From Macrostomum lignano (Eukaryota): 64,000 bases of DNA. The stretch is taken from positions 1-64,000 of the forward strand of contig NIVC01002964.1 in assembly GCA_002269645.1 (NCBI GenBank), in the 5' to 3' direction. Every line of letters starts with the position of its first letter. The stretch's first letter is position 1. Both the position numbers and the translations under genes were made by a program. Below, one piece after another: positions 54,505 through 64,000 of the stretch. Under the pieces are notes generated by a model. It was not told the DNA's origin. It did not search any database and was given only the letters and a program-made list of their open reading frames with translations.

Positions 54505-57500
54505 ATGCGTCTGACGGTGCTGCTTCTGCTCTCCGTTGTGGTGCTTCTGGCTCTCAATAGCGATGTTAGCGACGCCCGAAGATCGAAGCCGTGAGTATAC
54601 TCGTAGACCGAATTAGCTTTGCCAGTTACACTACTTAAAGCAGGCTAGTGTCTCAACTTGCTTGGATCAAGTTTGCTCATGTCGGCTTTCGCGAATAAAT
54701 TTTCAGTCGCTGGGCCAGACGATGTTTTCGAAAGCTCGGAAAGACGGTGAAGCGTCTGAAAAAGCTGGCAAAGATCAGGAAGATCCGCGCTAGGAGGGCC
54801 AAAAGGTCCTGGGCAAAGCGCATGGTCGCATGTGAGTGCAGTCCCTAATGTATCTGTGCAGTGCATTGTCTATGGAACAAACTGTAACAAGCGAATAATT
54901 CCCGGCTCGATGCTCGACTTTCAGCCATCAAAAAGTGCGGTCGGAGGCGCTGCGGAAGGCGGCAGCGATGCGTCGTTCGGCTATCCAGGAGGAAGATTGG
55001 CCGAATCTCCCGCCGAATCGCCCGGTTACGACGCCGCTACCGCAAGAAGAAGGCCAAGATCAATCGAAAGTTTCGAACTGCCATTCGCCGCAGCTCGAAA
55101 CGAGTGAAAACGGCGGCCGGTCGCAAAGCGCTCTCCAGCAAAAAGTCCAAGGCCAGAAAGGTTGTCATCAAGAGGAAGAAAAAGCTTCGCAGGCGAACCA
55201 GAAAACGACTGGTATCCCTGAAGCGGAAATTGCGCCGGGCTCGACGAGGGTCGAAGAGGTGCGTGTCCAGGAGACGCCGCAGCTCGCGAAGGAGACGTGG
55301 TGAGTATTCACTTTGTCGGCTGTATGAAAATACGGTGCAGTGTATGCGGCCCTATTCATAAAAACATCGCTTCTACTTCCGATCCTACAGGCGTGCGGTG
55401 CGGCCGAAGACGCTGCAGCATTCGTCAGCGATGCGTCGCCCGACGATCCAGAAGACGAATCCGACGAATCCGCCGCCGAATCTCCAAGCTGGGACGATCG
55501 TATCGCAAGAAGCGGGCTAAAATTAGCCGCAAGTTGCGCGCCGCCATTCGCCGCAGCTCTCGACGCGTCAAATCGCTGGCCGCATGCCAAAGGCTCTCCA
55601 AGAAGCGATCCAAGATCAGAAGGGCAGCCAATAAGCGAGTAAAGAAAGTTCGCAGGCGTTTTAGAAAGCGACTGGTATCATTGAGACGCCGACTGAGAAG
55701 AGAACGAAGAGGATCAAGACGTTGCGTGTCTCGAAGGAGAAGTCGCGGTAAGCCATGGAATCTTTTTCGAGTAATAGACTAAAGTCACACACACACACAC
55801 ACACACATATATAAATATATATATATTTGCTCCTAAAGGTGTTCAATGTGGCCGAAGACGCTGCGGAAGACGTCAGCGATGCATTGCCCGACTATCGAGC
55901 AGAAGAATCCGCCGAATCCGAAACCTATTCTCCAAGGTAAGACGATCCTATCGAAAGAGACAGGCCAAAATCAGCCGAAAATTCCGCGCCGCCATTCGCC
56001 GGTATTCGCGATCGGTAAAGTCAGCAGCAGCACGTCAAAAACAAGCCAAAAAGAGGGCTAAGGCCAGAAAAATTGTCCGCAAGCGAACTAGAAAGCTTCG
56101 AAATCAAACTAAAAGAAGACTGCGATCTCTGAAGCGCAAATTGAGTAGAGCTCGGCGACAATCAAGAAGGTGCGTTTCACGAAGACTAATTAGATCCAGA
56201 AAAAGACGCTCCTTGAAACGCCGTGCCAACCAAAGAAGACGCTCAGCGAGAAGACGTGCCAACCGAAAGAGACGTGGCAGCAAGAGACGATCGAGGAGAA
56301 GCCGAAGACGTGCCAACCGAAAGAGACGTGGCAGCAAGAGACGATCGAGGAGAAGCCGAAGACGTGCCAACCGAAAGAGACGTGGCAGCAAGAGACGATC
56401 TAGGAGAAGCCGAAGACGTGCCAACCGAAAGAGACGTGGCAGCAAGAGACGATCTAGGAGAAGCCGAAGACGTGCCACCCGAAGAAGTCGAAGAGCGAGA
56501 AGACGCGCCAACCGAAAGAGACGTGGCAGCAAGAGACGATCTAGGAGAAGCCGAAGACGTGCCACCCGAAGAAGTCGAAGAGCGAGAAGACGCGCCAACC
56601 GAAAGAGACGTGGCAGCAAGAGACGACCTAGAAGAAGAAGACGTGCGACCCGAAGAAGTCGAAGAGCGAGAAGACGCGCCAACCGAAAGAGACGTGGCAG
56701 TAGGAGACGATCTAGAAGAAGCAGAAAACGTGCCACTCGAAGAAGTCGAAGAGCGAGAAGACGAGCCAACCGAAAGAGACGTGGCAGCAAGAGACGATCT
56801 AGGAGGAGCCGAAGACGTGCCACCCGAAGAAGTCGAAGAGCGAGAAGACGCGCCAACCGAAAGAGACGTGGCAGCAAGAGACGATCGAGGAGAAGCCGAA
56901 GACGTGCCACCCGAAGAAGTCGAAGAGCGAGAAGACGCGCCAACCGAAAGAGACGTGGCAGCAAGAGACGACCTAGAAGAAGAAGACGTGCGACCCGAAG
57001 AAGTCGAAGAGCGAGAAGACGCGTCAACCGAAAGAGACGTGGCAGCAAGAGACGATCTAGAAGAAGCAGAAAACGTGCCACTCGAAGAAGTCGAAGAGCG
57101 AGAAGACGCGCCAACCGAAAGAGACGTGGCAGCAAGAGACGATCGAGGAGAAGCCGAAGACGTGCCACCCGAAGAAGTCGAAGAGCGAGAAGACGCGCCA
57201 ACCGAAAGAGACGTGGCAGCAAGAGACGATCGAGGAGAAGCCGAAGACGTGCCAACCGAAAGAGACGTGGCAGCAAGAGACGATCGAGGAGAAGCCGAAG
57301 ACGTGCCACCCGAAGAAGTCGAAGAGCGAGAAGACGCGCCAACCGAAAGAGACGTGGCAGCAAGAGACGATCGAGGAGAAGCCGAAGACGTGCCACCCGA
57401 AGAAGTCGAAGAGCGAGAAGACGCGCCAACCGAAAGAGACGTGGCAGCAAGAGACGATCTAGGAGAAGCCGAAGACGTGCCACCCGAAGAAGTCGAAGAG

Positions 57501-63500: not shown

Positions 63501-64000
63501 AGATCTTGAGAAGATACAAAAAGATCAAAAAAGCCTACAGAAAGATGTTGAAGCGAGCAGTTGTTTCCTACTACAAACGGAGGGTTAATGTCGTGAGATC
63601 ATTGAAGAAACGGCTAAGAAAGTTCAAGCGGAGACCAAGAAGCTTCAGAAGACGCTACACACGCCGAGCCATCTGCGTTGCAGTAAATCCATGCCGGAGA
63701 AAGCGTTGTAGTCGAGGGTTTATCTGCCGGGTGCGAAAGATCAAAGCAAAAAGTGGCCGAACCAGATCTGTCGCTCGATGCGAGAAGAAAGCCAGTAAGT
63801 ACTCGTACTTTTTAATAACTTTAAATTTTCTGTCAAAAAGTCATGGATTTTTTGCAACTTTCTCAGCCTATATACAGACCTACAAAGAGTAAAGCATCAA
63901 ATTTCAGACAAGTGCAGCAAGGTGAACTGTTCCAAGGGCAAGCGATGCATCGTCAGGCGGGTGTCGACTCGTACTTTCAAAGGTTTCCGCTGGTTTGCCA
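54505..64000 (+). CDS. Very large secreted Arg/Lys-rich protein with follistatin-N-like Cys modules, a protamine-like repeat and two SUEL lectin domains; runs off the window
   Basis: Coding exons 54505-54590, 54707-54831, 54925-55299, 55391-55747, 55839-59387, 59461-59685, 59818-60273, 60367-60474, 60555-60671, 60827-61033, 61197-61646, 61745-61840, 61925-62800, 62889-63794, 63908-64000 (8026 nt, ~2675 codons, open). Signal peptide MRLTVLLLLSVVVLLALNSDVSDA. All introns are GT-AG. Confidence 0.88.
56240..59160 (+). repeat. Coding tandem repeat, 87-bp unit with a 54-bp sub-unit (ANRKRRGSKRRSRRSRRR + ATRRSRRARRR)
   Basis: Direct reading of the DNA and of ORF 56141-59404. Confidence 0.95.
59838..60096 (+). 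other. SUEL / rhamnose-binding lectin domain 1
   Basis: ACEHSSISIRCPKG...FYGRTNKTVC...C...CQGRRSC...[21 protein letters not shown]; 8 Cys with YGR and DPC..TxKY motifs. Confidence 0.9.
61214..61475 (+). other. SUEL / rhamnose-binding lectin domain 2
   Basis: SCEHGSSSLRCTSG...FYGRTSGSVC...C...CQGKSSC...[21 protein letters not shown]. Confidence 0.9.

Follow-up and report, generated by a model that had tools for sequence, protein, structure and literature searches.

A Macrostomum lignano gene for a giant arginine-rich protein with two SUEL lectin domains, a candidate secreted component of glue or mucus

The window analysed here is the whole stretch of 64,000 nucleotides formed by positions 1 to 64,000 (forward strand) of contig NIVC01002964.1 in the Macrostomum lignano assembly GCA_002269645.1. 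Its end, positions 54505–64000 on the plus strand, is occupied by a gene for a very large, arginine-dominated protein with two SUEL lectin domains. The initial annotation, made from the sequence alone, had described more than 2670 codons spliced in frame over 15 coding exons, and this structure is borne out: the 15 exons join to 2675 stop-free codons, and the frame is still open at 64000. All 14 introns are of the GT..AG type and 73–163 nt long. Intron 1 is of phase 2 and the remaining 13 are of phase 1, hence exons 3–14 are symmetrical 1-1 units. The ATG at 54505 is the earliest in-frame start downstream of the stop at 54472–54474. Exon 1 encodes MRLTVLLLLSVVVLLALNSDVSDA followed by RR, with a charged n-region, 15 hydrophobic residues, Ser at position -3 and Ala at position -1; by eye and by the -3/-1 rule, this is a signal peptide, as claimed initially. 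We conclude that this is a genuine protein-coding gene of M. lignano, spliced from at least 15 exons. The window holds its 5' part, probably about 85–100% of the gene.

The predominance of Arg, Lys, Ser and Ala with hardly any acidic residues, also reported initially, is confirmed by the composition of the joined coding sequence (CDS): R 39.9%, S 11.0%, K 10.7%, A 9.6%, G 3.6%, C 2.6%, D 0.3% and E 0.3%, so that Asp and Glu together make up 0.6%. There are 1351 Lys and Arg residues versus 15 Asp and Glu, which gives a net charge of about +1336, with an R:K ratio of about 4:1. The mass of the part encoded in the window is 331.6 kDa, and it contains 69 Cys residues.

The block of about 1000 amino acids (aa) that had been likened to protamines is an Arg-rich tandem array of some 1040 aa in exon 5 (residues 435–1478 approximately, 3.1 kb). 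The DNA is purine-rich and has periods of 54 and 87 nt with 93–98% identity; the protein units are an 18-aa RRRANRKRRGSKRRSRRS and an 11-aa RRRATRRSRRA. Across the array, two forward frames out of three are open, as is one reverse frame, hence the length of its open reading frame (ORF) is no evidence of coding. The Arg frame alone is continuous with the exon 5 acceptor, the Cys module of exon 5 and the donor at 59387. Moreover, the copies differ mainly at third positions of this frame, with 45 synonymous versus 18 non-synonymous variants in the 18-aa unit and six versus none in the 11-aa unit, the counted variants being non-independent events. The paralogous modules of exons 3, 4 and 5 show a similar picture. 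They are mutually 61–68% identical, their third positions differ about twice as often as the first and second ones, and synonymous changes account for about half of the codons that differ. The gene combines old internal duplications with a very recent expansion of the array. Two further ORFs overlap the array, an acidic one of 974 aa on the plus strand and a Leu/Arg-rich one of 1018 aa on the minus strand (Table 1). They are by-products of a T-poor, purine-rich, stop-free repeat and not separate genes.

The array hydrophobicity has a 100-degree periodicity, and by simple arithmetic 18 + 11 residues make 29, that is, about eight helical turns. If the array is helical, its few small residues would form one stripe; Gly and Pro variants may break the helix.

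The region upstream of the gene is unusual as well. A 35-bp minisatellite (29 copies) ends 22 bp upstream of the ATG, leaving hardly any unique promoter-proximal sequence, and the hexamer 'tttcag' 8 nt upstream of the ATG is a candidate cis- or trans-splice acceptor.

The gene has been detected before but never described. In its sheet footprints_Trypsin_intact_1, Dataset S2 of Wunderer et al. (2019, PNAS; PMC6410801) includes a 4920-nt M. lignano transcript, of the type 5UTR_CDS_3UTR (UTR, untranslated region), with SUEL, latrophilin and CSL3 as the top matches. Its translated frame has 1639 aa and an isoelectric point (pI) of 12.48, and SUEL is the only strong Pfam match. All five peptides of this entry match our model exactly, in exons 7, 11 and 14, and thereby lend support to the Arg reading frame as well. 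The protein could yield 23 tryptic peptides of at least 7 aa, and the five observed ones are among the seven longest. The footprint samples came from intact animals. The possibility that 1639 aa and 4920 nt represent the complete CDS was rejected, as the mass-spectrometry (MS) database consists of frame translations of entire transcripts (in all entries checked, the protein length agrees with one third of the nucleotide length). The 4920-nt transcript must be a short-read fragment starting in or after the array and, judged from it, there is room beyond the window for at most about 400 codons plus a UTR.

The other record is UniProt A0A1I8FTR7 (M. lignano, 344 aa, equivalent to about 54950–56400), a frameshifted model of exons 3–5 that is 97% identical to ours over exon 3. 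It has the same exon 3/4 and 4/5 junctions and thus provides independent support for the splicing. Its automatic name, 'Serine/arginine repetitive matrix protein 2' (SRRM2), is an artefact of low-complexity composition. With the 4920-nt transcript and its peptides, these junctions uphold the spliced transcript expected from the initial annotation. No paper on this protein was found in the literature on Macrostomum lectins, arginine-rich proteins and basic proteins of rhabdites.

Two SUEL lectin domains had been claimed, and both are present. Pfam PF02140 matches two stretches of the joined protein, in exons 7 and 11, with 143.8 bits at a cut-off of 31.4, and these are the only domains that Pfam found in it. 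Domain 1 was aligned over its full length to PDB 5h4s, to 2zx0 (CSL3) and to the rhamnose-binding lectin domain (RBL) of latrophilin, with all eight Cys residues and the YGR, DPC and KYL motifs kept. The E-values of the lectin against solved structures range from 1e-15 to 1e-67. Domain 2, judged by eye and by alignment to domain 1, has identical Cys spacing and retains the motifs; between exons 7 and 11 the identity is 46% over 147 aa. It is likely that both domains bind sugars (L-rhamnose or D-galactosides). In sequence they are ordinary members of the SUEL/RBL family, alongside sea urchin SUEL and SUL-I (PDB 5h4s), chum salmon CSL3 (PDB 2zx0) and the latrophilin RBL (PDB 2jx9). The known proteins of this family are small tandem-domain lectins or G-protein-coupled receptors of the adhesion class that carry SUEL as a domain. 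A homologue search with exons 6–12 yielded only ordinary SUEL lectins of other animals, none of them in a Lys/Arg-rich (K/R) context; unlike the M. lignano protein, no SUEL member among these matches sits within a polycationic chain exceeding 2600 aa.

The remaining Cys residues follow a repeated grammar that is newly recognised here: a knot, a loop and a closing Cys. We counted 13 C-x4-C-x5-C motifs, in agreement with the at least 13 Cys knots noted initially, and 11 of them begin 2–3 residues past a phase-1 intron. The consensus is x-C-x-R/K-x-R/K-C-x-R/K-G-x-R-C-V-x-R. Each of the 12 complete modules has one closing Cys in a common local motif (e.g. SKRCVSRR, VARCVRPR, KARCVRSRR). The loops, measured from the third Cys to the closing one, fall into several length classes: 13–20 aa (four modules), about 96 aa (three), 127–128 aa (two) and 248 aa (one). 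The two others, of 196 and 199 aa, each enclose a whole SUEL domain, so that the Cys pattern places each lectin inside a loop. According to the Cys lists, only C35 and C261 lie outside both this grammar and the SUEL domains. The Arg array, which has no Cys, sits between modules 3 and 4.

Structural models of two loops were built with AlphaFold2. Exon 9 is predicted to form a beta-hairpin (mean predicted local distance difference test score, pLDDT, 85.9) with strands at residues 11–22 and 25–36; the third and fourth Cys, at residues 13 and 34, face each other at its base. In the model of exon 3 (pLDDT 89.7, predicted template modelling score, pTM, 0.67), two antiparallel helices, 21–57 and 63–107, form a hairpin clamped by strands 13–18 and 109–114, which bear the third and fourth Cys. 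Further, the hydrophobicity of the long loops peaks at 95–100 degrees per residue (z = 2.1–6.4 versus shuffles), in independent agreement with the helical reading. From these models we infer a string of 13 'knot-loop-clamp' modules, in which C-x4-C-x5-C and the downstream Cys would clamp the base of the loop. The loop itself would be a cationic beta-hairpin (13–20 aa), an amphipathic cationic helical hairpin (about 96–250 aa) or a helical stalk tipped by a SUEL domain.

A HMMER profile of modules 1–3 run against 1.84 billion cluster representatives gave a single match, A0A1I8FTR7, the model of the same gene. The homologue search with exons 13–15 gave no match at E<=0.01, and Foldseek of both AlphaFold2 models against PDB gave none at E<=0.001, only non-significant generic hairpins and antiparallel coiled coils. 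By these searches the K/R modules appear to have no relative outside M. lignano. The resemblance of C-x4-C-x2-G-x2-C to a follistatin-N/EGF hairpin was considered and rejected: the isolated Cys modules, compared with Pfam at E<=10, matched no FOLN or EGF family, the best match being EGF2_RECK (E=0.55, 10 bits). Thus, of the initial claim that the protein belongs to no recognised family, the part concerning the K/R modules stands, but the two lectin domains belong to the known SUEL family. No characterised protein of the same architecture emerged from the homologue and profile searches, in line with the initial annotation, which did not recognise the architecture.

Three groups of proteins invite comparison. 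Mlig-ap1 (PMC6410801) is an adhesive protein of 5407 aa whose K/R regions flank a core of C-type lectin, vWD, C8, TIL and 17 EGF domains starting at about aa 2758. It resembles the protein considered here in that it is from the same species, giant and secreted, has a signal peptide, large Lys/Arg-rich regions, pI above 12 and a lectin domain, and occurs in the footprint MS sheet that also lists our protein; for both, the proposed partners are polyanions, heparin among them. It differs in its C-type lectin, 'GRK' repeats and vWD/EGF core, whereas the present protein has SUEL domains, Gly-poor Arg-dominated repeats and no vWD or EGF within the window. Other flatworms have the K/R part as a protein of its own, ap3: Mile-ap3 in Minona ileanae and Tmed-ap3 in Theama mediterranea (PMC6745481, PMC9229212). 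The ap3 proteins are secreted and consist almost wholly of polycationic low-complexity sequence, and a signal peptide with a long Lys/Arg stretch is found here too. However, by their descriptions, on which this comparison is based, they have Gly-Arg-Lys repeats without lectins, unlike the Arg/Ser/Lys/Ala repeats, SUEL domains and Cys clamps of our protein. Expression in adhesive glands and a phenotype in RNA interference (RNAi) have been demonstrated for ap3, while our protein is known from sequence and footprint peptides. The presence in footprints typical of ap3 is matched here by five exact peptides, the sample not being pure glue. Sfp1 of the sea star Asterias rubens is a large, secreted, Cys-rich cohesive footprint protein with galactose-binding SUEL-type lectin domains. 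Presence in footprints and SUEL-type lectins are shared, but Sfp1, with its vWD, C8, EGF and discoidin domains, lacks a polycationic character, and the sequence relationship is limited to SUEL. In its presumed mode of action the protein would resemble the polycationic cohesive parts of flatworm glues (Mlig-ap1 flanks, ap3). Judged by sequence, it would be a member of none of these groups, the two lectin domains being its sole parts from a known family.

The footprint MS sheet lists a further strongly basic translation with SUEL (11590-nt transcript, 3863 aa, pI 12.13) and hemicentin-like matches, as well as vWA proteins with pI of about 11. The deposits of M. lignano may hold a whole set of unusually basic secreted proteins.

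We consider it reasonably likely that the protein acts, once secreted, as a polycationic lectin in deposited glue or mucus, where it cross-links glycoconjugates, both anionic and galactose-bearing ones. It would be secreted via its signal peptide, and its approximately 1350 guanidinium and ammonium groups would bind to glycoconjugates of polyanionic type (sulfated or carboxylated glycans) and condense them, Arg favouring the pairing with sulfate and carboxylate. Such charge condensation would serve storage in granules and, after release, cohesion. Each SUEL domain would be held at the tip of a cationic helical stalk, and the two lectin heads would attach specifically to galactose- or rhamnose-terminated glycans. 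A candidate ligand is Mlig-ap2, the glycoprotein of the glue that carries Gal-beta1,3-GalNAc and is positive for peanut agglutinin (PNA); otherwise the heads might bind the worm's own mucus or glycocalyx. The net result would be a multivalent cross-linker, both electrostatic and lectin-based, in a film of glue or mucus. Heparin and other sulfated sugars are known to block attachment of M. lignano, and a Gal-beta1,3-GalNAc glycoconjugate that is positive for PNA is present in the adhesive vesicles. Either finding fits this protein as well as it fits Mlig-ap1.

Several points weigh against the reading as a secreted cross-linker. The five peptides were found in one sheet, footprints_Trypsin_intact_1, and many housekeeping and other cellular proteins are also found in footprint samples, so that presence there is no proof of regulated secretion. 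The two proteins of the published model have been argued to make up the bulk of the adhesive-gland content, and the source of our protein may be rhabdite, mucus, frontal or cement glands. The AlphaFold2 models were based on very shallow alignments (3 and 13 sequences) formed by internal paralogues only. The chain has 217 R-x-[KR]-R motifs, possible proprotein-convertase sites, and might not stay intact. Finally, exons 1–5 are joined to exons 6–15 by phase and frame only. Since the two known proteins would account for the gland bulk and cellular proteins occur in footprints, the reading as a secreted cross-linker is divided about equally among three sources: adhesive glands, mucus or rhabdite glands of the epidermis, and other glands.

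A more specific form of this reading is that the protein is an overlooked third structural component of the duo-gland glue. The SUEL heads would dock on the Gal-beta1,3-GalNAc of Mlig-ap2, and the array would be an element, perhaps the one, that is blocked by heparin and neutralised by the polyanionic releasing secretion. We regard this as a tentative possibility, more probably wrong than right. In a weaker form, the protein would be a basic matrix protein of rhabdites or mucus, charge-condensed with acidic glycans.

The initial annotation had listed glue, mucus or defence as candidate functions. It remains a list of candidates, in which the presence in footprints favours glue or mucus. Under the defence option the gene would encode a polyprotein, an antimicrobial or opsonising secretion with clamped beta-hairpins and helices resembling antimicrobial peptides, perhaps released by furin-type cleavage at R-x-K/R-R, and with RBL heads recognising microbial glycans. 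The 217 motifs mentioned above, together with the amphipathic 100-degree periodicity, are consistent with it, as are the disulfide-closed cationic beta-hairpin predicted for the mini modules and the intact SUEL/RBL domains. Fish eggs and skin use rhamnose-binding lectins in innate immunity, and polycations of the protamine-like kind have bactericidal activity. However, the observed peptides are ordinary tryptic ones spread over exons 7–14, which is compatible with an intact chain, and Mlig-ap1 demonstrates that K/R-rich regions can survive the secretory pathway of the worm. Moreover, no similarity to a known antimicrobial family was seen with Pfam on the Cys modules or with Foldseek against PDB. 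Hence we consider a defence polyprotein unlikely.

It is also rather improbable that the model is over-joined, that is, that exons 1–5 and 6–15 are two genes, or that much of the 3.1-kb array is intronic or results from expansion in the assembly, in which case the protein would be shorter and less extreme. The sole recorded transcript, at 4920 nt, is shorter than the non-repeat CDS of the window plus UTRs, the peptides come from exons 7–14 only, and the openness of the array in three frames also suits this explanation. On the other hand, short-read assemblies collapse or break at such arrays, as the authors state for Mlig-ap1. Exon 6 itself provides neither a start codon nor a signal peptide, although SUEL domains need secretion. 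Frame and phase run unbroken from exon 5 across the array as far as a consensus donor, and the bias of array variants to synonymous sites of the Arg frame likewise argues for a translated array.

The region might be the N-terminal half of Mlig-ap1, that is, a part of an already characterised adhesive protein. The species is the same, both proteins start with a signal peptide, their N-terminal regions are rich in K/R and comparable in length (2675 aa seen here versus about 2757), and the window ends before the core could appear: C-type lectin, vWD, C8, TIL and EGF domains are absent from the 2675 aa seen, and the core would start at about aa 2758, beyond the window. However, the MS sheet that lists our five peptides has an entry of its own for 'Mlig-AP1_1' (4806 aa, pI 12.28), whose peptides are unique, and ours are filed elsewhere. 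A search of the window in six frames did not find the antibody epitope SRKPRRKNRKSRKP. None of the 18 published primers matches the window at three or fewer mismatches, which is weak alone, as the primers could lie beyond the window. Further, the regions of Mlig-ap1 are described as Gly-Arg-Lys rich with no SUEL drawn, as opposed to 3.6% Gly and the R:K ratio of about 4:1 here. This identity is largely refuted and has very little chance of being true; the gene is, largely, established as different from that of Mlig-ap1. The primer RNA815_13121.1-F (Mlig-ap1 probe) matches 61247–61265 (+) with four mismatches, which leave unchanged the T-S-G-S-T encoded there in SUEL domain 2; the match may be due to chance or, at most, hint at a related, paralogous lectin segment in the Mlig-ap1 transcript.

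The array shares with protamines a similar Arg content and the pattern of Arg clusters and Ser, but protamines are small, nuclear and devoid of a signal peptide, unlike the present protein with its signal peptide, disulfide domains and occurrence in external deposits. A nuclear basic protein, either sperm protamine-like or an SR-type splicing protein, as its Arg/Ser-rich composition and the UniProt name of A0A1I8FTR7 might suggest, is contradicted, and hardly credible, in view of the N-terminal signal peptide, the 69 Cys in extracellular-type disulfide patterns with two SUEL domains that require disulfides, the lack of cwf21, RRM or other nuclear domains in Pfam, the origin of the SRRM2 name in low complexity on a frameshifted model, and the recovery of peptides from surface deposits of intact worms, not nuclei, in line with the initial annotation.

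Of all reversible animal glues, that of M. lignano is understood best; its current model comprises two proteins and an unidentified anionic releasing factor. If the protein is indeed a third glue component, the published two-protein model of temporary adhesion is incomplete. In any case it is a separate lectin-bearing member of the same footprint proteome, more cationic still, and a new candidate for the heparin-sensitive step, for glycan-mediated cohesion and for the matrix of mucus or rhabdites. The architecture, with disulfide-clamped cationic hairpins, stalked lectins, an Arg array of about 1000 aa and an eight-turn period, may interest designers of biomimetic polycation or coacervate adhesives. 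The gene is essentially absent from public protein sets, its sole fragment there being mis-named SRRM2.

Table 1. Exons of the SUEL-containing gene and other features of the window
Feature	Position	Strand	Description
Exon 1	54505–54590	+	start codon and signal peptide (MRLTVLLLLSVVVLLALNSDVSDA followed by RRSK); donor GTGAGT; intron phase 2
Exon 2	54707–54831	+	K/R-rich, 41 aa; single Cys (C35) outside modules
Exon 3	54925–55299	+	long module 1: knot C75/C80/C86, 96-aa loop, closing C183
Exon 4	55391–55747	+	long module 2; 67% identity to module 1; extra Cys C261
Exon 5	55839–59387	+	long module 3, tandem array, degenerate repeat tail
Exon 5, 5' part	55839–56198	+	long module 3: knot C318/C323/C329, closing C426
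Exon 5, tandem array	56199–59328	+	about 1040 aa; 18-aa and 11-aa units; Cys-free
Exon 5, end	59329–59387	+	degenerate repeat tail; donor GTAAAT
Exon 6	59461–59685	+	knot 4 (C1509/1514/1520), K/R arm toward SUEL domain 1
Exon 7	59818–60273	+	SUEL domain 1 (59838–60095), K/R arm, closing C1717; two MS peptides
Exon 8	60367–60474	+	mini module C-x4-C-x5-C-x16-C
Exon 9	60555–60671	+	mini module C-x4-C-x5-C-x20-C
Exon 10	60827–61033	+	knot, K/R arm toward SUEL domain 2
Exon 11	61197–61646	+	SUEL domain 2 (61217–61474), K/R arm, closing C2013; two MS peptides
Exon 12	61745–61840	+	mini module C-x4-C-x5-C-x13-C
Exon 13	61925–62800	+	two long modules, loops of 127 and 128 aa
Exon 14	62889–63794	+	one long module, loop of 248 aa; one mini module; one MS peptide, GAGSFLWGR
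Exon 15	63908–64000	+	13th module begins; exon cut at window end, gene runs on
Acidic ORF over array	56223–59147	+	974 aa
Leu/Arg-rich ORF over array	56104–59160	-	1018 aa
35-bp minisatellite	53462–54483		29 copies
Helitron-like remains	5693–9875	+	Helitron_like_N (5693–6409), PIF1-type helicase pieces (7869–8465 and 9150–9872)
23-bp satellite, block 1	11017–11808		AAACATTAAAGAGCCACCATGTC; 34 copies
18-bp array, first	11877–11986		trails block 1
23-bp satellite, block 2	12712–16869		180 copies
18-bp array, second	16953–17209		trails block 2
PRPF8 gene	about 23896–39416	+	spliceosome Prp8; PRO8NT, PROCN and domain IV matches
PRPF8 intron minisatellite	24596–25173		30 bp, 19 copies
PRPF8 intron minisatellite	26638–27669		20 bp, 52 copies
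PRPF8 intron minisatellite	31810–32293		20 bp, 24 copies
PRPF8 intron minisatellite	33803–34465		44 bp, 15 copies
PRPF8 intron minisatellite	36931–37684		20/60 bp
15-bp array	48184–50116		CCTGACCCACTCACC; 129 copies; GC skew -0.75
'PLTHS' ORF in 15-bp array	48163–50310		715 aa

The rest of the window contains, among other features, a PRPF8 gene with long minisatellites in its introns, and several repeats. The domains of the Helitron-like remains are split over several ORFs, hence the element is probably interrupted or decayed. Each block of the 23-bp satellite is trailed by an 18-bp array, and the whole, an AT-rich region with a strong strand skew, resembles a duplicated composite satellite. 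The 15-bp array has several open frames, the 715-aa 'PLTHS' ORF being one example.

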